A model generated the notes under the pieces. The model saw nothing but the letters and a program-made list of their open reading frames with translations. It ran no database searches and was not told the origin of the DNA. A DNA stretch of 63,972 nt, the filler included, from Klebsormidium nitens (Eukaryota; Plantae; Klebsormidiophyceae): assembly GCA_000708835.1 (NCBI GenBank). It is 4 parts of 4 records of this genome, joined end to end, with 100 filler letters (N's around TTAATTAATTAA, not from the genome) between each part and the next. Parts side by side here need not be neighbours in the genome. Positions count along the whole stretch, not along the records: positions 1 to 13,345 come from DF238069.1; 3 more parts are not named here. One strand, written 5' to 3'. The position numbers and the translations under genes are program-made. Below, piece after piece: positions 1-13,345 of the stretch (its first letter is position 1; the number at the start of each line of letters is the position of its first letter).

Positions 1-651
1 AAGTGAGATAAGTGAGATAAGTTTTTGCTATTTCACGTAGCTTATTACATAGGCATCATGCTTTTTCGCTTCGACTGCATATGTTGAGCGCACCCGACAC
101 GGCACAGCCTCGACTCATCACGGCACGACAGCAATTTGGTGCATGCGATATAGCACTGGGATTGGACATTGGTACTTTTGATGCACAGCGTGACATAACC
201 AAAGCTACATCGACCCGCAAATCACATGGGAGATGCATGACTTTATTGACATGTCTATGGCGTGCTGACATTCAATAGGGAGACTCTACGTGTAAAGGCA
301 ATCTACTGACATTGCCGAAGGGTGGAAGAGCAGTCGCTATATTAGTCTACAGCTACACGGTCGGCTCTAATCTGGACGCCTGCCTTGAAATTTCCGCGTC
401 TTTGCTCTGCCGGAAGGCATCAAGCGAGGGCTCGGAGGTCAAGCTCCTCAGCAGCGGTGCTGTCCGGGAGACTCGCGCTAATACATTCCTTCCACTCGAC
501 GACTCCGCTCTCTGATCCTCGCTATGCAGTGGGTGGTCTACAGTTGGGCCGGTTTGTCGTTGGAAACGACCAGGATACATTACCGAGCCCCCTTTACCAG
601 CCGTCTAACAATCACTCCTATTTCAGTCCCTGACCGCCGCTCCGTGCCGAC

Positions 652-3600
652 TTAGAGCTGGCGTGCGAGGGTGCGGAAGTCGTCCTTGCACTGCGCGAGC
701 ATGGCGGCCTTCTTCTGGAGGGCGTCCCTGTGCGCGCGCATGGCCTCCACCGCGCCCGGCGCCACGAACATGTCCATGAACACGCCGTCCGTGCAAGCGA
801 ACAGCTCCGCCGCCAACGACAGGCCCAGCCGCTCGCGGCTGCAGCCACGCACACGCGGATGATAGACGGTCAGCCACAAGTGCGCAAAACGCGTTGAAAG
901 TAAAGCCGTCCATTAAAATAAGAGGCGAAAGGTGCAAGCAGCGAAGCCCGTCAATGGAAGACCGCAGTGATTTGAGCTGGGTAGGCAGTGCTACCGGCGC
1001 TTGTGAACTTTTTTGTTTTCTGACCGTTGTCATCAACCAACCTGGAGTGCGGTGCCAGCTTGGAGCAAGTTGGGTCTGAAGCAAATCGCGGATCGACAGG
1101 TTTTCGTGGCCCGAAAGCACGCGGCTAGATACTTGGAGACACTTTTTCGAGCCCCAAATCGTGCAAGATGGCCGGAAGAGGCGGGGCTGGCAGGCTGACC
1201 AGGGCGTGAGGAAGCCGGCGTTGAGCGTGGCGGGTACCATTTGGTGCACCACCACCTCGCGGATGCGGCCGAAGTGCTCGCTTGCGGCCGCCCACACGTC
1301 GCCGTACACGCCCTTGGGATACCTGCGGCGGCACAGCGCAGACTCGGAGCATGTTAGAACCAATCCAAGCGACCCTTGACGGGAAGGCTCGCCTTTCGCG
1401 CACGTTCTTTCTTCCTCGGCCACCATCTCTGGAGTTACTGGCTCCCTAACTTTCGATAGAATGGGACTCGATTAGGTGCAGCTTTCGAGCGGCAGTCCCA
1501 TCCCTGGCAAGTATAGACATACTACAGGGATCAAGACGGACTCAAAGCTACTTGCATAGGTAGTGCACTGGTCCGCTCGAGATGCAAGAAATGCTGTATC
1601 AGAGTGCGGCTTACTTTCTGGCCGCGCGCGCCGCGTTCCCCGCGTTGGCGTGCTTCTTGTGCGCGGGCGAGTCGGAGAGCCCGCCGGGGCCGCCCGCCGC
1701 GAGGCTGAGCCGCCCGCTCGCAATGGCGTACTCGCGCTTTTTGTTCAGGGCGGCCGCGTCGTGGGCCGCCTGTAATAGATCGGCGAGACAAGTTGGCATT
1801 GAGGACAAGGGGAGATGGTCCGAGCAGGAATTCAAACGTATCAAGGTCACACCGTAACTCGCATACACTTCATGGAAGATTCAGAGCCACACCCACGATC
1901 ACACTTTGTATCTCAGGCAGATTGGGTAAGAAGCAATTTCTTGGAAAGTCAGAGGCGCTGATACATGTCATTCATGGTGTCTGACCTGCTCAGGGGAGGG
2001 CGTCTCGGGTACGGTGACCTGGCTCTCGCGAAACGGCTCTCGCCCGCTGCCTGAGTGGCCCTTGGGAGAGTGCGCCGTCCGCAGGCGCGTCAGGTGCGAG
2101 AGGGGAGGGGTCGACCGCACGCCTGCGCGCGCGGAAGCACTTCGGTTTAGGAGCAGAAGCAAGATGCAGGTATTTTCCTGGCTAGTGTTGCGTCCGAGTG
2201 TCTGCTCAAACCAGTTCCGCCTTCTCCTTACGATCGCAAGGGCTTTGCTCGGTGTTGGCCGCGCTCGTCGCTTTTTGCGTAAGAAACAATGCAAAATGCA
2301 GTCGTACCCGTGGACCCTAATCAGCGGACTGAGCAATATCCACAAAAATAAACACAAAACAAGGGCCCTTCTTTCCCTTTACTCCTGACTTTTATATCTC
2401 TGAAAGCTTTCGCGAGCGGGACCCCTTTCTGTCTACCAGTTTCTCACAGATTGAGCCATTTCCATGGCCGCTCACCTGCCCCTGGCGGCGGCATGTTCTC
2501 ATCGTCGCTGGTCTCCTCCACGGACCGCCGCCCCGACGACTTGTCCGACAGCACCGAGTCTCCCCCCAGCAGCTTCTCCCGGAACGCGCCCCCCCCCTCC
2601 CCGGAGTAGGCCGCGGCCCCCCCTGGCGCGGTGACGTGCACGCCGAAGGGGCTGGTGGCGGCCTCCAGGTGGTGGCACGCCATGGCGGCGCACTCGGCGC
2701 GGATGGCGTCCAGGAAGCCGTCGAACGCGGCCTTGAGCGCGGCGTGGAACGCGGAGTAGGGGGCCAGGCTCACAGGGCACGCGCCGGCCTCTGCGGTGGG
2801 GCGGCAAAAAGGGGAGTTAGTCAGGGAGCGAGGACGCGCAAGAATCCAGGCTTACGCTACGGGATGATTGGAGCAGCCGCATAGAATGGTGGAAAAAGGA
2901 CTCTGTAAAACGATTCCGGGATGCGTGCCTCCAACTAATACTTCATGCTGGTTTTGTCGTGCCTTGCAGCAAGTATCAGCAGAAAACTGTCGCAAAAAGA
3001 ACAACCCGCCTCCTCCCTGATCGTAGTGCGTGTTGTCAAAAGTGTCACAAGTATGCGCGCACAACTTCTTATGCAAGACTTTTGTTCCTGAAGAGAGTTC
3101 TGTAGGCCACGTTGCCAGCGCGTCCTAAGGGCCATAAGCGCCGTCACTGTATCTGCTCACCCTCCGCGCTGTGCTTGACCATGTCGGCCGCGAGGTCGAA
3201 GAGCGCGCGGATGACGTGCGCGAGGCGGTCGCAGGCCGTCTCCAGGAGCGGCGCCAAGAACGTGCGCGCCGCCGACCGCCCCAGCTCCGCGCCCGCCGCG
3301 GCTATGGCCGCACCGCTGCCGCCGAAGCCGCCCGCTTTGCACAGCAGCAGGTTGGCCACCTGTGGCCCAGCAGAGGACAACTCAGCAGCGGCCGGGGATC
3401 TTCAAACACGACTAGCGCGACCTTTTCGAGCAGAACGGCACGTTGGTACGTTTGTTCTAGCACGCGGTCTCCGCCTCTCGTCTCCGTACCGGACCATTAA
3501 AGGCGCTGACATGAGAACTTTGAAATACAAAATCGTGACAAATCCTCGTTGAGCGAATCCGTAGCGTCTAAAAAGTTGCAAATCAATTATATCGGACTGC

Positions 3601-6600
3601 AGGTACAGTGAAGGGGAAGCAGCATCAGTTCGAGACGGCAGGGAGCGCATGCGCGGTGGTGCTCGCCTTCTCCCGCGACACGGCGGGGCAGTCGAGGCTG
3701 CACGCGGCCGCTCGGAACTCGTCCAGCACCCGCTCGAAGGCGGCGCCGCCGTACAGCCGCAGGCTCGAGTTGCCCGGCTTCACCTCCGCTGTCACTCCGG
3801 GCCACGCCGGCACGCCCGCGCTGCAGACCGGAAACAAGGGGTGGGTCAGGACGGCCAGGTGGCAGCTTTCCCCGTTCAGCTTCCTCGTCGTAAACGTCAT
3901 GAAAGAACATTTTTTGAAGGTCGAGAATGGAATATATGCTGCACTGGCAGAGATCGGTTACGAAAATAGGAGTTGAGCAGAGGGGCATGTCCTATTTGGC
4001 TGCCTGGTGCTTATGCCCCTCGCCATTGCAGGACCTTCAAAGACCTGCTTTTTGCTCATTCGTTGAATCTAGGCTGACGCCTGCTGACTTCGAGAAGCTG
4101 CATAGCCTTTCAGATTTGACGCGGAGCTTCCTTCACAGATGCAAACAAGAACAAAGGCCGCGGTAAGGCCCGTGGCACGACAAAATGGCTGGCAAGCCAA
4201 GAACATACATCTTCGGTCCAGAGACTCGCAGGTTCGAGGCCCCGCTGCTGACCTGGCGGTGGCGCGCCTTTCCTCGTCGGTAGTCCTGCCCCACTCCCCC
4301 GGGTCCGGCCCACACGCCACCCCGGACCCGTCCAGCAGGCTGGTCACGTGCCGCGCCACCTCAGCGGCATGAATCATAGCGGCTCGCCGCAGCGCTGCCA
4401 CGTCAGCAGCCGAGGCGAGGCGCGCGGAAGCACGGGACACCTCGGTGGATAGCTGAGAGCAGCGCCGCTCCAAGAGGGCTAGAGTGGCAGGGGCCGCATC
4501 GCGGTACCTGGATGGACCGGGCGGAACCGAGTCCGTCTACGAAGAGTGGTAACACCCAAACGGGGTTCTTTCGAGTCAGAATCATAGTGAGCGGGGCAGC
4601 CACCTTGACGACCCTCCAAGTAGCTTCAGAAGCGGGATGTTCAAAGGTGATGGTCTCGGTGAAAAGAATCTGCAGAAGTCCTCGCTAAGATGGGGCTCGC
4701 CAACGACACAAGGGATGCCGGTCTCTCACAGCCGCTACTCCCTTCGCTCGCTGGGATTGAGGAGTAGGTGAAACGCAGTCATAGCTTTTGAGGCTCTGAA
4801 AGATCCTCAAGCTTCTACCTTAAACGTTTGAGAGACTCTGCGCCGAATCTGTACTTTGATGAAAGCGATCAGCAACACCTCCGATTGCTATGTTGACCGA
4901 GAAGAAACACCGGACAGTAAATGAGCAGCAGCATTGGACATCTCGCCCTTCTCGGAAGCTTCGTTCAGTATGCCCGTTTCTTTACTCAATGTCGCTGCCG
5001 TTGCCGGCAGGTAAGTGCGCAGGAGCGTGCGAGGCGGCGCACCTCTTTTGCAGCTCGAGCTCGAGAAAGTGCCGTAGGTTGCAGAAGCCAACACGTGCGC
5101 CATACTTGTCCTCGTCGAAGCCGCCAGCGATGCCCTCTCGAAGCTGCTTCAGAATCTGGAAGGCGACATACACAAGTCAAAGACGCTGCTGGATGTCTAT
5201 CGCTCCTTCCTCCGGGATACTGCAATGCAGCACAGGCGAAATGCTGCATCCCGCTGTTCTTGACGAACATCATCCTGCCACTGTAACCTGGTAGAAGGCC
5301 CGCCATAGAGATCACACCCAGGACCTCTATCAAATGCAAGCATCCATACAGCTGACTCTTCTACCAATGCCTGCTTCCCCTTCTTGTCAGCCCGCAAGCG
5401 ACGTGTGCGCTCACCTGTTTGTCGGTTGCCGCAATCTTGTGTCGGAAGTCCTCTGCTGTTTCTGTGGCTAGAGCATGCGTGCCCCGCTCGCCTTTGGGCA
5501 GCGCCACGAAGAAGGGCCGGGCCGTCTCGCCCAGGAAGCCAGACGCGCTCAGATAGCGGTCCACCTGGCACGAGCAGACTGAGCTGAGTGCACACACAAG
5601 CTGTTTTCATGGGCGGCCTTAGGTCAACCTATTGTACCGCCCATCTTGAGGCGGTTAGTATAGTGCAGGAGGAGAGGTCTTTGGAACGGGTCGAAGATGA
5701 AACAATCCTTACCTCTGGGGACAAGCGGTGGCAACAGCTTGCTTCTGATACTGCTTGACTCGCTGTTGCCACTTGCTCTTCCCGTGACCCAGCCTTCCTT
5801 ACGGGTGTGCACCCTCTTCTTTGCATTTATATTGAGGGCCCTCTGTCTGCTTTAAGACACCCACTAAACAACAGGAGAGACAGCCCTGTTGCTGAATCAC
5901 ATTTCACATAACAGCACAAGGCTCACCTCCCAGCGTTCGGCAAACTCCTTGAGGCGGTTGTCAAACTTGGAGGCGACGATGACGGTGCGCTTGAGGCCGG
6001 GGTCCACCTCCTGCGCCACCTTGAGCCACAGGCTGCTGCACCACTCCACGCTGCTTTGCTGCGCGCACACCAGGGGAAACATGCTCACACCACACCGCCA
6101 AAGCACGCCATGCCACTCACTGCCCGCTCAGTCGCAACAGCATGTGACTGGTCCCTTGCAGAACGTCCCGCCCTTCCACAAAGAGCCTCTCGAATGTTGC
6201 TGCATCAGATGGTTTCTAGCTTGCCAATAACCCATCAACTCAGGCCGTCCATGATTCCCACATTGAAGACTTTCCCACAGGAATTTCCCACAGGAAGTGT
6301 TTCTTTGTATTTCTTGAAAAGGACCCACCAACCACAACATGCAGAATCGTGCATCTTTACGTGCACGCACCTGGAGGAAAAGGATGAGGCGGTTGGGCTT
6401 GCCCGCCAGTTCCTTGACCATCGCCTGAATGGCCTCCGGCGTGTTTTCCGGCTCCCCTTTCTTGGCCTGCACCGCGGTCCATGGGTCACCTCAGAAAGCA
6501 GCACACCAGATTGTGGGCTCCAAGAGCAACTTCTTGCAACCTGTTTGTCTTGCTATGAGCCTAAAAAGGTCCACAGGATGGCATTGGTTCATACAAGTTT

Positions 6601-7962
6601 CTTCCATCCACTGAGCAGTGGAGACCAGTCAGTGCGCCGTACCTGGAGAACAAAGCCGGGGGTGTCGATGATGGTGAGGTTGGGGCAGTACGCGTACTGG
6701 GCCTTGAGCACAATGGGCTTGGCGCTCACCGCGCACTTCACCTGCACACTCAATGAGCAGCCTCAGAAATGTAGGCCAACCTGCTCTCGGTAGCTGATGC
6801 TACAGATTGTTCTAGGTAGTTCTTTGCGTAGCCCTGCGTCTGAACGTATAAGATGCTTCAATGTGGCTGCACAGCAGTGCGTGTTTGCTCTTGTGCTCAG
6901 TTCAGTACCTTCTTGAGGTGCTCTTCCGTGCGTGCTCGGATTGCTTCCGCCACAGCGGAGGCAGGAGAGATCTCCGGGCCGTACTCGTCGCTGTCCTCGT
7001 CCTGTGCAGAAGAATTACGCCCATGAAAAAGCTTTCTCACAATTTCCATATGGAAGTGGAGCTGCCATAAGCAAACGCAGGCAGCTGCATCTAGCAGAGA
7101 AGGGTTGCTCGACATGTTGCACCCGGTTCAATCTCTGGTCAAACCAAGAGGCGGTTTTGCCGCAGCGTGCAGCGTACCTGCAGTGCACACCGCGGTTCCA
7201 GTGCTGTGGGGTCGTGGGTCATCTGGACCATCAGGGGCCGCCGCGTGCCCATCTCAACCTGCACAACTTTCGTTGTTGTCAAGGATGCAACTACCAATAC
7301 GGCCACCCACGAACTCCTCGTAACTTGCACAAAAGGTGAATAACAGACATGCAGAGAGGTCCTATGAGAGTACTTCAGCTAGCCTCCTAAGTCATGAGAA
7401 GTGACTGACCTCTCGCACATTGAAGCGGAACCCCAAGAGCGCCTCCAGCAAGGAGCTCTTGCCGTCAGACTGCCCCCCAATGGCCACGATCTCAGGGATT
7501 GGAAGTTCCTCCTGACACATGAGTAAGCGGATAAACGCATTAGCTATTTGGAAAGCACCTAAGACTGGGTTTTGGACTCAACAAAAGGGCCCCAGTATTG
7601 GCTGCTGCCAGGAAGGCACTTCAATGGGTCAAGTTGGCGGCCCAGATTTTGCATCCAAATGCTCTCAATGAGCAACTGGTTTGCAAAATGTCTGCTCAAG
7701 AAGACAGCAGTCATGTTAGCTTGCAACAAGCACATGGGGCACAGGCTTTGCCGCAGACAGCTTCCATTAAACGCTTAGACCCTCAGCTTCTTGCATTCAA
7801 GAGACGAAGAGAAGCAGAGCTGCTCACCCCAAACGCCACAGCACTGGCCTGCAGCTTTGAGTATGCTTCATATCGCGCCTTGCTGTCCTCGTTTGCAAAA
7901 GGGTCCATGTTCAGCGTGCCCATCGTCCTCCTGCGCTGCTTTCCAGTGTCTGTGCGGTCCAT
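652..7962 (-). CDS. DRP5A: Dynamin-related protein 5A (cytokinesis-type DRP5), 17 exons, ~841 aa
   Basis: Exons assembled on the minus strand: 7962-7828, 7511-7410, 7258-7178, 7001-6909, 6741-6643, 6466-6371, 6058-5927, 5564-5415, 5155-5043, 4507-4253, 3820-3667, 3359-3161, 2790-2476, 2122-1986, 1769-1615, 1322-1200, 838-652. Total is 2526 nt with consistent phases. Motifs: G1 GGQSDGKSS, EMGTRRP, G3 DTPG, SKFD, and plant DRP5A-typical RLYGGAAFERV, VPETPSP and C-terminal FMDMFVAPGA. The start ATG at 7962 is the least certain part. Confidence 0.93.
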
Positions 7963-8709
7963 GTATTGGAGCAGCCACTGATTGGGGCCCAGAGACTTCT
8001 TTGACAGTATGGTCAATGGGAGCAATGCTTAATTGCGAAACAACGCTGTCTATTTGCCATCCGCTGTTGGGCCACTGCTCACAGCTATCCAGACCATACT
8101 TAGAGTCACTGGGAAGCAATCCTTACCATTCCTGATCAAACTCTGGGCTGCATAGATGCCCAACCCTTACTCCTCTTCTCTGAATCCTCATAGATTTGGC
8201 AAACACCGCTCGAGCAAGCGCTGTAAGTATTCCTCACAACTCAATTAATGTCAGCCAACTACCTCTCTTGAGTCATTCTTCGCCTTTGTAATGGCCTAGC
8301 ACTTTTCCTTCACCTGCTTGAAGCTTCTGCAAGCAAGCAAGGGCTAGCGCAGTCAAGTGTGATGTGCCTTTTCGATTTGCTTTGTCCTGATCAACAGGAA
8401 TTCATTGTTCAGGACGCGTATCAGCAAATCAAAGTTGAATTCGTATTTCGAAGTTTGTTGTTCCTGATTTCAGATCGGACGGCGACGATTGGCTACGAGG
8501 GTGGATCGAACGATGCCAAGGTTTCAAAAGCAGGGGCCTATCATCGCCTATGACAAGCGCTGCAGATGTTACCGTATGGTTATATTAAATGCACATAGCA
8601 TATGATGTTTTGGGGTCTTTTTTTTTTTTTTTTGAGTGTATAACCTGAGCATACCGAGCTCATCAGCTGGAGCATCGGGACTGCTATACGCGTTACCGCG
8701 ATGGCGAGT

Positions 8710-10296
8710 TTAGGAAAGTCGTCGTCGTTTGGAGCGTGGGCGGCGAAGGAGCCAACCTGCTTCGAGAAGGGAGGAAAACGTGGGCCGAGTCACAAAAGCG
8801 GGGGGCATAGTGACAAGGCCAATAGGAGGGTCAACAGGAGGGTCAGGTGGACGAGGCGGGGGTTTAGGAGGGGGCCGATCTGAGGGGACATAGTTGTGGC
8901 GTATATAAGAAGGGGGCCGGCGTGCACGTTTGGGTCTCATAGGGGGAGTCTGACTTGCTGCGGCGGAAGCTGGGGGGTGCAGTAGAGCGTTTAGGAGCGA
9001 AGAACATGTACGCACATTTGTGGCCAAATCCAATAGAAGGGTATCATAATGATTGCCAGAGTGCAAAAGGTGTAAAGCACCAGATTGAACCGTTTGAGGG
9101 CAGAAATTCAAACGAAAACCATGTGTCTGCGTTTGGGCGGACCAGATAAGCAAGGGACGATTGTGAATAACAGCAATAGCATGGGCTTCAAGGTCGGAAC
9201 CCCAAGGAAGAGGCTGACAGGAGGTCATCCAATCGTAATAGGCTGCCGCTGAGGAGAAGCGGTTGACAGTGGCCGAGGCGATGGATGTATTGCGCTTGAT
9301 CCTCATATAGTGGCCAATGTGAAGCAACATAAGCGGCAGCTTGAACCCGAAGGGCGACATGATCGACAGCAGGTAGATCAAGTGCAACTGAAAGCGCATG
9401 GAATAAGCAATTGCCATCACCTGGGACAGGGTGAATTGTAAAAGTGGCTGGAAAGTCCTGAGAAGCGGATTGAAAGAGAACAACAGAAGACGTACGAGGC
9501 TGAGGTGGTGAGGAAAGCTGAATTAGGCGGTCTGCAGAGGCACAAGCGGTGGGTGGTCGTGAAATAGCTGAAGGCGGTCGGGGATTTGATGGTTGTGAAG
9601 GCAAGGGGTGGGGAAAAGTGGGTCTGTGCAGAGACGAATCAGGTATAAGTACTGTGCATGAAGCTGAACCACCGACTGGGGGGGAGTAAAGTGCAGAGCG
9701 GCGAACAGCAACGGCCTCCGCATATTGAACGTAATCATCGTTGGTCATTTGATCAAGAGGCTTGGGGTTTGAGAACAGTCGCATGCGATCGCGGAAGAGT
9801 AGATGGCTAGAGCGGAGGTGATCGCAGCGAACCAACCAGAGAGTGTGAAAACCGGACAGAAGAGAGAGATGTAACTTTTGTCCAAGTTTAATGGCGTGTT
9901 GTGTGTCGAGACATGATTCTAAAACGTCGCGGAGAGAGAGAGGGATCTGAGCAGCTGAACGAAGTCGAAGTGTGAGCATCGATAGAGAACGATCATGCTG
10001 GAATCCTGTAAAAGGGAAATATCAAGCCAAAGAGAACGAACAATCGCAGAAGGCAATGAGAACTTGGAAAAAATGGAATCAAAGACACAAGCAAGCATAG
10101 CCGAACGATGAGAGTTGAGGAAAGAACATTGGAAGAAAAGATGCTCAATGGTTTCGCGTTCAGAGCTCTGACAAAGAGCGCAGGACACATCCGGATAGAG
10201 GCGCGGTCGAACTTTATTCAAGCGATGAAACGTGGGAAGAGTACGACCGATAATTTGAACCAGAAACTTCCGAAATAAGTTGTGATTGTGGGACAT
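8710..10296 (-). pseudogene. LINE C-terminal region: CCHC zinc finger followed by OTU-family cysteine protease and Pro/Arg-rich tail
   Basis: LPT..RL..LYP..CALC...ETIEHLFFQC (ORF 9919-10296). LWLVRC and PGDGNCLFHALS lie in one ORF (9188-9979). WGSDLEAHAI and SGNHYDT lie in ORF 8710-9483. Confidence 0.85.
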
Positions 10297-11030
10297 CAGG
10301 ACACTGGACGATGGGCCAAGCCAGATGGTTGGCTGTACAATCGAGTGTGCCAGGTACTCGAAAAGGTGTAGCGATGAGCAGGATGAGCAAGGATGGATTT
10401 GAGTAACTTGGATGGAGCAACATCCAGATGAATGTTAATCGGAGGAGATACGAACGACATAGTAACAATGTTAGACGGTGCGGCGGATGCTGGATACAAT
10501 GGCTCGGCAAGGCGAAAAAGAGCGGGCGGACGGAACGTAAGCTCGTCCGGAAGGAGAAAACGACAGGCAGTGAGGCTGCTTTTCGCAGGCGGATCAGCCA
10601 ATCGGTTGAACTCCTGATGAAGTGCAGCCCCACGTAGGGAAGCAAGGTCGAATGTCAGTGGGCAGTGATCCCGCTCATGGGCTTTGACGTGGCATAAAGT
10701 TGTGGGAGCAACCCGCGTGCGGATCTCATGAAGTATGCGAAGAATCAACGACCGATCCGAAAGACGGAAGAGACGCGATTGTAGAACTGGAGTGGTTAAA
10801 AGCCGATTGACTTGATCAACCAAAGACAGTCGATCACAGTGAATGGTTAGGGAAATATCGGGTCTGGTAAGTAGAAGGGCACCCAGAACGGCAAAACCCT
10901 CAGCGCGGCTAATGCTTTGCTCGCCAGGTGTGCGGGAGCGGAAGGTACAAGCAACGGTTGTGGATGATTGATCTGCGTTCAGACAATGCTGAATCCAACA
11001 CGTTGGCTGGTCTCAAGAGCGCTCCCATCG
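10296..11030 (-). pseudogene. RNase H domain of the LINE (frameshifted)
   Basis: AYTDGS (ORF 10979-11602), then in a shifted frame PGEQSISRAEGFAVL, IHCD, HVKAH and FNRLAD. This is the D-E-D-H-D pattern of RNase H1. Confidence 0.85.
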
Positions 11031-11652
11031 GTATATGCCACAGGATGGCCGAGGGAATGTTTGCGGACACGACCCCAGAAGAGTGGGGTTTCAGAGCAGT
11101 CTGTTGCAGGGTATAGTGTATGGGCTCGAAGAAGAACGTCCTCAAGAAAGAGGTTGACCAGTGTTGCAAGTAAGCGGGTTTGAGGTTTTGTGAGACGTAA
11201 TTGTGTGCGTATTCCGGCGCGCAGAATGTGTTTCCAAGCGGAGGAATTCCGATCGCTGAACTGGCTGATGACACGCAATGGAGGAACAATCTGGCGGCCC
11301 TTTTGCAATTCCCAGGGTTCGACCGGGCCAGAAGGATGATTGGTTGCAAAGTGAGTCAATGGTATCATTACCGAAAAGGGGAGAAATGTCGTCCAGAGAA
11401 GATACCTGAGGTGCAGAAAGAACTTTGGGGAGAAGAGTACCGAGAGTGAGGGTGGAAAAACCGGCCGAGGTAAGAAGCGGGCCATGAGTGTCGAGAATGG
11501 AAGGAATGATCCTGGAAAGGGAGCGCTCGGTTGCAGAGGGTATGGACGCAAGCTGTAAATCCAAGCTGGCGGTAAGATGGTGTAACGTGGGGCGGATGGC
11601 ACGGAACAACATTGGTAAGCGTGTGTCTCTGCGACGAATTTGTAATCCTCGA

Positions 11653-13251
11653 CTACTGAAAGGGCAAGCGCCTGAGACTCGGAGGACTGTACCGAAGATG
11701 CGAGTAAGCAATAGTTGTGGTTATGCGACAGGGTTCGTCCACGGAATCAAATAAAGAAATAAGAAAGTCTGTGCGCACAGTACGTTGCAGATTGGTGACA
11801 TTGAGGAGACCCTGACTGATGAGAAGGTCTGTTGGAGTGGAGGAGGCGAGTTTAGCCAAGGCTTTAACTGTGTGTGCTAAAATGGTCTGGAATTTTTTCA
11901 GATACTTCTTGGGGAAAGTGATCAGGTACATACGATAGCGCAGAACAGATGCCACATCTGAGTTTGTGTAAAGAACAGCTTCCGCAAGGGATATGTTGTG
12001 CCGTTGTCGAGCCAGCAATTGCTGGCTGGCGTGATGGAGACGATCAACAACATCATGATACTGATAGGTATAAGTAAGTGCCATGTTCACATGGAAGCCA
12101 AGGTATTTGTAGGGTGTTGTGCGGGATAGAAGAGGTATTTGGCCCCACGAAGTGAACAGGGGAGGCGGTCGATACAGAGGATTTGGATCGTGAAACTGGT
12201 AACCACATTTGAGGGGTGCAAGCGCCATATGATAGTACAGGAGGAAAGTTTCAAGCATTTTCAGAATACGAGCAACATGTGTATGTTGATGCGCAATGAG
12301 AGCGAGGTCGTCAGCATAGCCATTTGCGGGAATGCGTGATTGTTGTCGTAAGGGCGACCAATGATGATTGACGGTGAGATATCCAAGATTTTCACTGCGA
12401 AGCCAGATAAAAAACATGTTGAGAACGAGCGTGAACATGGTGGGACTAAAGCAGTCCCCTTCGTGAACGCCCATTGTTTTCCCGTAAGGTGCAGAGAGAC
12501 CGGTTGGACCTCGTGCAGTAATGGTAAAGTCGTTTTGAGTCTCAAGTATGAAATCCAGAAAAGGCCCATCCAAACCGATGCACTGAAGGGCGTCGGCAAA
12601 CGCTCGGTAGGGGACGCTAGGAAAGGCCCCCTTGATATCAGTGTAGACCACATGAATGGGTGCGTCATGTTGGCGTGCGTGCGAGATGAGGTTGAATAAA
12701 ACAGCGGCCTTGTGTGCAGCATGAACGCCTTTGCGATTGGCGCCTTGGTTACAATCCAGGCCCGCCGTATCAGCAAGTGCTTGTTGGAGACGTCCATTGA
12801 GAATCCCGGTGAGAATCTTGAAGAAGCAACTAAGAAGACTGATACCACGGTAGTTGCGGTATTCCAATGGGTCGCCGGATTTATGGATGAATATCAGAAG
12901 GGCGGCCTTCATCTTTTGAGGCAATTTCTTCCGGCTGAGTAAAATGTTGAGAAAGCGAAGGAGTATGCTTTGAATGTTTAGGTCGATAAGGTTCGTATCA
13001 TAGCACAAAAAACGGAGAACGTTGTACTGAACACCATCAAGGCCAGGAGAACTACGACTTTTGTTGAAGAGAATTTTGGAGATCAAATGTTGAGATAGGA
13101 GCCATAATAGCCGTTTCACGGCTTTTGAGTTCGGCGCGAAGAGACGCCCAGATGGCTGGCTGTAACCAGGGGGCAGACGCAGGATCCTTAGGCTGTGCGA
13201 TGGGCATTGTGCTGGGTTTTGCGGCTGCCGCGGAGGAGCCCGAAAGGTCAT
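11653..13251 (-). pseudogene. Reverse transcriptase domain of the LINE
   Basis: Motifs SPGLDG, IFIHKSGD, NYRGISLLS, TDIKGAFPSV, GVHEGDCFSP, GYADDL and YKYLG. The upstream PISTFDLQNSL segment lies in another frame (ORF 13052-13300), so there is a frameshift near 13060. Confidence 0.93.
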
Positions 13252-13345
13252 TGACTTCAGCGCCTGTAACGAGGCGAGTAGAGTCGGCAGGGTGCTTCAT
13301 GAGGGCAGGAAGAGCTGTTGAAGCGTTTTTTTGGACGAAGTGTAA

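Follow-up and report, generated by a model that had tools for sequence, protein, structure and literature searches.

In a 63,972-nt stretch of DNA from Klebsormidium nitens (the window, along whose whole length all coordinates count), we found a long interspersed nuclear element (LINE), read on the minus strand, whose coding sequence continues beyond its reverse transcriptase (RT), RNase H and CCHC zinc finger into an OTU cysteine protease domain. Most probably it is a decayed copy of a multi-copy LINE family with an apurinic endonuclease-like (APE) domain, in which the OTU, a cysteine isopeptidase, is an integral C-terminal domain and is presumed to act in cis as a deubiquitinase. LINE proteases of the Josephin and Ulp1 types are known already; what is new, and well supported by comparison of the sequences, is a C-terminal OTU in a LINE family of the order APE, RT, RNase H and finger that comprises three deep subgroups.

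The window copy extends from the contig edge at 13345 to a tail of 16 A residues (8618-8633). Within an open reading frame (ORF) at 9188-9979 (minus strand), the motif LWLVRC (9824-9841) is followed in the same frame, 134 residues further on, by PGDGNCLFHALS, the Cys loop of the OTU domain (9389-9424), which reads as GDGNCLFHA and contains the catalytic Cys codon at 9407-9409. A single frameshift falls within the domain at ~9269-9300, and an ORF in another frame (8710-9483) supplies WGSDLEAHAI (9175-9204) and SGNHYDT (9040-9060, His codon 9049-9051) before closing with a Pro/Arg-rich tail, KRRRLS and a stop codon (8710-8712). The stop is followed by an untranslated region (UTR) of 76 nt (8634-8709) and then by the 16 A residues. 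An earlier note, made from the sequence alone, had described this run past LWLVRC into the Cys loop, the resumption after one frameshift, and the position of the Cys, Trp and His loops inside a poly(A)-delimited element; direct reading of the two ORFs and of 8618-8709 bears it out on each count, with the domain at 9016-9472, upstream of the A-run.

On its N-terminal piece, the window domain reaches only 19.2 bits with the Pfam OTU profile (E 0.0019; cut-off 23.3), because the frameshift splits it. A hidden Markov model (HMM) of the family OTU, built without the window rows and run on 392 six-frame segments of the window, matched just two of them: 10021-9191 (E 2e-19, HMM positions 5-79) and 9522-8713 (E 6e-23, HMM positions 85-185). 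The two halves complement each other to give a full OTU domain that one frameshift interrupts, and their agreement with the model is far beyond chance. Alignment with proteins of related copies by tblastn showed that the frame changes at least six times from 13345 to 8710, and the window copy is therefore a dead, non-functional pseudogene. From 5' to 3' along the element, its parts are as follows.

13055-13345, minus strand: segment between endonuclease and RT; tblastn, 73% identical to the APE-containing ORF of locus L003 at its residues 744-840; in a frame other than that of the RT ORF
11653-13251, minus strand: RT ORF of 532 aa; Pfam RVT_1, E 4.2e-18
10329-11320, minus strand: RNase H region in two reading frames; tblastn, matches at 38-48% identity in the L001 and L002 RNase H ORFs
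10012-10326, minus strand: CCHC zinc finger of the zf-RVT type; Pfam zf-RVT, E 1.8e-7, 32.2 bits (cut-off 27.5), in ORF 9919-10296; tblastn
9680-9988, minus strand: all-helical post-finger module with LWLVRC and LLFRDR...KPL..MT.DDY; alignment A3, AlphaFold2
9473-9679, minus strand: Pro/Ser-rich linker, poorly conserved; alignment A1
9016-9472, minus strand: OTU cysteine protease domain with one frameshift and intact triad codons; family HMM, Pfam, alignment A2, tblastn
8713-9015, minus strand: Pro/Arg-rich C-terminal tail with a basic KRRRL end; like motifs in relatives
8634-8709, minus strand: family-specific 3' UTR in which a conserved CGCG hairpin is joined by another stem; aligns with the 3' UTRs of L002 and L008
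8618-8633, minus strand: poly(A) of 16 A, the 3' end of the insertion; read directly

The contig edge cuts the 5' side of the copy, so that the APE domain and the 5' end lie outside the window. The RT ORF is 82-83% identical to that of L003/P0001, and 51-54% identical to those of L001 and L002. No direct RNase H match was obtained in the Pfam scan of the window ORFs; the homologous ORF of L001, with which the window region shares 38-42% identity, passes the Pfam RNase_H threshold (28.1 bits). The terminal KRRRL motif, also present as a basic C-terminus of this type in L001, L002, P0043, P0044 and P0055, is a possible nuclear localisation signal.

Relatives of the window RT ORF turned up only in metagenome and Sequence Read Archive (SRA) assemblies, whose contigs were retrieved and their domains mapped by tblastn. 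Seven other independent loci from at least five datasets share the order of finger, helical module and OTU, the OTU-bearing loci coming from JGI 3300060284, JGI 3300060285, ENA ERZ26165376, Logan SRR23617307 and Logan SRR12417992. Identity in the OTU between the query copies and these related loci ranges from 26 to 72%, and RT and/or APE lies upstream wherever the contig of a relative extends far enough. The domains mapped were:

L001, L002 and L007: APE, RT, post-finger module and OTU, in that order
L004 and L005: RT, post-finger module and OTU, in that order
L006 and L008/L009: post-finger module and OTU, 5'-truncated as LINEs often are

In some copies the finger and the OTU are encoded by one intact ORF:

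L001: 610 aa; Pfam OTU 30.4 bits; intact OTU domain at L001:7241-7768
P0047/L004: zf-RVT 31.7 bits, OTU 46.5 bits
P0044: finger and OTU in one intact ORF
P0154: finger and OTU in one intact ORF

With the finger-to-OTU segment of L001 as query, an exhaustive HMMER search of 1.84 billion representative proteins returned 105 matches, 38 of them at E <1e-10, and many cover the post-finger module and the OTU together. Decay of the kind typical of LINEs is seen in the 5'-truncated L006 and L008 and in frameshifted copies. A scan of metagenome contigs with the OTU alignment gave 41 loci, none of which carried the family RT, APE or post-finger module. A chimeric artefact that joined RT and OTU parts during assembly is unlikely, since the arrangement recurs in several independent assemblies. 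The proposal in the earlier note of an RT-RNase H-finger LINE with a C-terminal OTU thus holds as a family trait, and copies with one continuous ORF, for which it proposed a search, were found from finger to OTU, though none at full length. Most copies also continue from the W..RC motif, where it had supposed such ORFs usually to end, through the linker into the OTU; P0051 and P0053/L010, which lack the domain, do not.

Could the window OTU instead be a one-off, acquired by 3' transduction of a host OTU gene or left by a nested or adjacent transposon of the Helitron or Ginger type? Helentron and Ginger1 DNA transposons do encode OTU domains, and two Helitron proteins, P0120 and P0139, are weak outgroup matches of the family OTU. 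The same junction is nevertheless found at the seven further loci over the whole range of OTU identity given above, and their divergence and differing flanks exclude copies of one chimeric locus. Moreover, the finger and OTU share a single ORF in some copies, Pfam scans of the window ORFs detected no Rep/helicase or integrase domain, and the window OTU is flanked by LINE parts and followed by the LINE 3' UTR. This UTR can be aligned among the window (8634-8705, minus strand), L002 (13150-13221) and L008 (11996-12068), in each directly before the A-run, and it folds into a CGCG/CGCG hairpin that does not vary, followed by another stem in which changes are compensatory; in an RNAalifold prediction based on just these three sequences, 5 of the 15 pairs show compensatory changes. 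A-runs close L002, L004 and L008, the UTR of L004 aligning poorly. Because the OTU lies upstream of the family's own 3' end, 3' transduction or adjacent insertion is excluded. On the shared junctions, single ORFs, concordant trees (below) and 3' UTR, we rejected a one-off capture or nested insertion, which we regard as scarcely credible. The conserved UTR itself may be the element by which the RT of a 'stringent' LINE recognises its template.

The OTU and the remainder of the ORF share one line of inheritance. For the same nine copies, maximum-likelihood trees were built from the post-finger module and from the OTU, with the window OTU halves joined by XXX at the frameshift, and the two are concordant at every supported node: L004 and L006 group together with support of 100/99 in both, and the grouping (P0044, (L001, L005)) has support of 90/87 and 99/98. 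The window copy clusters with L002, L007 and L008, among which the branching is not resolved. Between L001 and L005, the OTU has a dN/dS of 0.098 and the post-finger module one of 0.076, against 0.36 for the tail, and although these ratios are rough, with dS saturated (~1.7), the contrast in dN is clear. The same pair retains 73% amino-acid identity in the OTU and 33% in the linker; across close copies, the corresponding values are 58-73% in the OTU versus 28-33% in the linker. The domain lies inside the element, is co-inherited, has kept its triad and is under purifying selection.

Besides the saturation of dS, several observations weigh against the explanation given at the outset. For the pair L004/L006, dS was not computable. 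The 5' end and the target-site duplication of the window copy are out of view past the contig edge, and no fully intact, full-length ORF was found; among the 1.84 billion representatives, the longest family protein has at most 723 aa. There is also a sublineage without the OTU: P0051 (Logan) and P0053 (L010:5966-7180, JGI), which come from different datasets and are 59% identical, are collinear with the other copies from the finger to the basic C-terminus, and L010 ends in the common family 3' UTR motif and an A-run. In a tree of the finger and post-finger module, a branch with support of 100/100 sets this pair, along with subgroups A and C, apart from subgroup B; the tree is unrooted and leaves loss versus late gain of the OTU undecided, with midpoint rooting favouring loss. 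The existence of this sublineage means that the OTU may be dispensable or supplied in trans, and it is not indispensable for the persistence of every sublineage.

The OTU fold supposed in the earlier note is supported by profiles, a structural model and fold searches alike. Intact relatives score 30-52 bits with the Pfam OTU profile, over the cut-off of 23.3. Against PDB sequences, the family OTU profile matched nairovirus L-protein OTUs at E 3e-18, and OTUD3, OTUD5 and yeast Otu1 at E 1e-15 to 1e-12. An AlphaFold2 model of P0049 residues 222-400 had a pLDDT of 92.2 and a pTM of 0.88, and every Foldseek match of this model in the PDB was an OTU deubiquitinase with probability 1.0, those at the top being OTUD2, OTUD1, Otu1 and the OTU of Crimean-Congo haemorrhagic fever virus (CCHFV), with OTUD3 also matched. 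A fold search of the ESM Atlas returned only cellular eukaryotic OTU clusters, the nearest with a TM-score of 0.71; a feature search of the same resource with the finger-to-OTU ORF gave no usable match. The window domain itself shows the D-G-N-C-L-F signature of the OTU Cys loop and, in WGSDLEA, the W-G-x-x-x-E motif typical of the centre of the domain. Judged by these sequences and models, the family domain belongs to the OTU cysteine protease family (Pfam PF02338) and is a predicted isopeptidase.

An inert relic, or a non-enzymatic ubiquitin-binding module retained for structural reasons, might also look like an OTU, and the OTU-less sublineage is compatible with such a role, as is the replacement of the triad Asp by Asn in two of the more distant rows of the OTU alignment (A2, 30 rows). 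The triad argues otherwise: across the three deep subgroups, Cys (26/27 rows) and His (23/23) are near-invariant, and Asp is present in 24/26. Taken with an OTU dN/dS of about 0.1 and a confident, canonical OTU model, this leaves catalytic inertness very improbable.

Assembled from its various copies, the family architecture would run from an N-terminal region through one or more 2A-like peptides, APE, RT, RNase H, CCHC finger, helical module, linker, OTU and basic tail to the 3' UTR and poly(A). At all four loci that reach the 5' part, a 2A-like GD(I/V)xxNPGP motif follows a Leu-rich helix directly upstream of the APE domain:

L001:1727-1940: two 2A-like motifs in tandem
L002:6272: one degenerate motif, NPGQ
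L003:1681: one motif
L007:209: one motif

The regions preceding the 2A motifs (L002:665-4120, L002:4133-7525 and L001:92-1700) are several hundred to more than 1000 aa long; those of L001 and L002 had no Pfam match. The APE domain is present in L001, L002, L003 and L007 (Pfam Exo_endo_phos, 28.8 bits in L001). Compared with PDB sequences, the L001 RT is similarly distant from R2 (E 9e-13) and human L1 ORF2p (E 1e-9). RT, RNase H and finger follow one another in this order in L001, L004 and the window, and the L001 RNase H fits PF00075 (28.1 bits) better than RVT_3 (16 bits). Plant-type L1 elements have zf-RVT followed by a C-terminal RVT_3; here an RNase H of the PF00075 type comes before the finger, and we did not assign the family to them. 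The post-finger module of ~130 residues was modelled by AlphaFold2 as helices only (pLDDT 83.5). It had no fold match in the PDB, a profile search gave at best E 0.11 with the finger region of R2, and no PD-(D/E)xK motif was visible in alignment A3 (19 family members). As the module is predicted to be all-helical and is without a PDB match, it is not a restriction-like endonuclease.

This last feature separates the family from the Dualen/RandI LINEs, which are among its nearest known counterparts. Dualen/RandI elements of Chlamydomonas and Haematococcus carry an N-terminal Josephin-related cysteine protease, cryptophyte Dualen a C48 peptidase, and the order of their other domains is APE, RT, RNase H and CCHC finger (PMC5029228). 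Both groups thus join a protease of the ubiquitin or ubiquitin-like system to a LINE protein of the same APE-RT-RNase H-finger order, and 2A-like peptides precede the APE domain in some Dualen/RandI members as they do here. The protease is a C-terminal OTU in our family, whereas it is an N-terminal Josephin or C48 in Dualen/RandI, which combine APE with a restriction-like endonuclease after the finger where our family has the all-helical module. We rejected membership of Dualen/RandI on the missing restriction-like endonuclease.

NeSL and Utopia-1_TSP are likewise retrotransposons lacking long terminal repeats (non-LTR elements), with a cysteine protease of the ubiquitin-like-protein system, but theirs is an N-terminal Ulp1-like protease in nematode, target-specific elements of the restriction-like endonuclease type, as opposed to a C-terminal OTU in an APE-type element. 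Helentrons and Ginger1 encode proteases of the same family, PF02338, and the Ginger1 OTU is likewise at the C-terminus of the transposition enzyme; these are, however, DNA transposons with Rep/helicase or integrase, and Pfam scans of L001, like those of the window ORFs, found no Rep/helicase or Gypsy-like integrase domain. In the L protein of CCHFV and related nairoviruses, an OTU is also fused to a polymerase polyprotein, although N-terminal to an RNA-dependent RNA polymerase and with ~20% identity to the family OTU, with no common origin shown. Nairovirus L-protein OTUs are deubiquitinases and deISGylases.

The earlier note had thought the arrangement undescribed, which is nearly right. Our search of the literature for OTU domains in non-LTR or LINE elements yielded no account of such a family, and the only relevant statement, and the only report found to join an OTU, a 2A-like peptide and a LINE ORF2p, is one sentence of a 2026 preprint on an ORF2p model from Symbiodinium necroappetens, in which a 2A peptide and a second RT accompany an 'N-terminal' OTU. 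That model concerns a dinoflagellate, places the OTU at the other end and comes with no family analysis. The protein was not among our HMMER matches in the 1.84 billion representatives, and it probably represents a different lineage. One might speculate that the model fuses two adjacent elements, the last part of one running on into the first part of the other.

The surroundings of the copies hold further features. Between 8500 and 13000, the plus strand of the window has a GC skew of +0.19 to +0.39 and a mostly positive AT skew; the sense (minus) strand of the element is pyrimidine-rich, unlike the flanking host DNA. An intron-rich host gene lies 3' of the LINE on the same strand (~600-8100, minus strand), and its exon-like ORFs with TRRPLMVQMTHDP and VASKFDNRLKEF resemble a dynamin of the DRP5/ARC5 type; Pfam and PDB searches with single exons of this gene gave Dynamin_N at E 0.18 as the best match. 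No relic of a dinoflagellate spliced leader was found in the window, and its contig is not human.

Among the related loci, the contig of L006 also bears an unrelated L1-like LINE (L006:7164-11420, minus strand) with a 1418-aa ORF (APE, RVT_1, zf-RVT). We considered this element as a sister group and rejected it, as it has 24% RT identity and lacks an OTU. A Peptidase_C48 (Ulp1) gene fragment at L008:18655-19044 (minus strand), ~7 kb from the OTU LINE copy, may be part of another protease-carrying mobile element. Next to the LINE copy of L002 lies a plastid-type stearoyl-ACP desaturase exon that closely resembles the Ricinus (castor-bean) enzyme (L002:16619-16942, E 7e-34), and L007 has a gene with a U-box and Arm repeats beside it; these neighbours hint at a photosynthetic, possibly green-lineage host.

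What the OTU does in live copies can be approached from the known biology of OTU proteases, by which it would be translated in cis with the RT and be active as a deubiquitinase or as a protease of ubiquitin-like proteins. The ubiquitin that it removes might be on the element's own protein or ribonucleoprotein (RNP), which would be spared degradation, or on ribosomes (40S subunits) that have stalled at the 2A site of the element; in both cases the element would escape degradation or quality control that depends on ubiquitin. The second idea arises from the co-occurrence of the 2A peptide and the OTU, and from a preprint noting that a viral OTU rescues protein that is lost when 2A stalls. At the integration site, chromatin or repair factors would be another target, a role already proposed for the OTUs of Ginger1 and Helitrons. 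We suggest only tentatively that this LINE lineage encodes its own counter-defence deubiquitinase, acting in cis on its protein or RNP or on 2A-stalled 40S subunits and so escaping the proteasome or ribosome-associated quality control.

Alternatively, the OTU could serve mainly as a polyprotein-processing protease that cuts the ~2,300-aa element protein, as arterivirus PLP2 and tymovirus PRO cut polyproteins, and would deubiquitinate only secondarily or not at all. The protein of the element is of great length, has many domains and contains disordered linkers; the best PDB sequence matches of the family OTU are viral OTUs fused to polymerases; and Helentron OTUs have been proposed to process the Rep/helicase/endonuclease protein. 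On the other hand, no conserved ubiquitin-like site of the LxGG type was seen in the OTU-adjacent linker in alignments A1 and A3, a systematic scan of the whole ORF not having been made; the N-terminal part of the protein is already separated by the 2A peptides; and the OTU fold is as near to the cellular deubiquitinases OTUD1, OTUD2, OTUD3 and Otu1 as to the viral enzymes. We consider a mainly processing role, although the chief rival, unlikely.

In conclusion, the accessory proteases of LINEs known so far, Josephin and Ulp1/C48, are functionally unexplained, and the OTU is a third protease of the ubiquitin system among them; it sits at the other end of the protein, and its lineage makes use of 2A peptides as well. 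To date, this whole LINE lineage can be seen only in metagenome and SRA assemblies that carry no annotation, and the family supplies compact, well-folded OTU domains (~170 aa, pLDDT 92). If a counter-defence function were true, retrotransposons, like nairoviruses and arteriviruses, would have recruited OTUs against ubiquitin-based host control, and the 2A peptide and the deubiquitinase would form a functional pair. The repeated, independent recruitment of such proteases suggests that ubiquitin-dependent control is a general barrier to retrotransposition.

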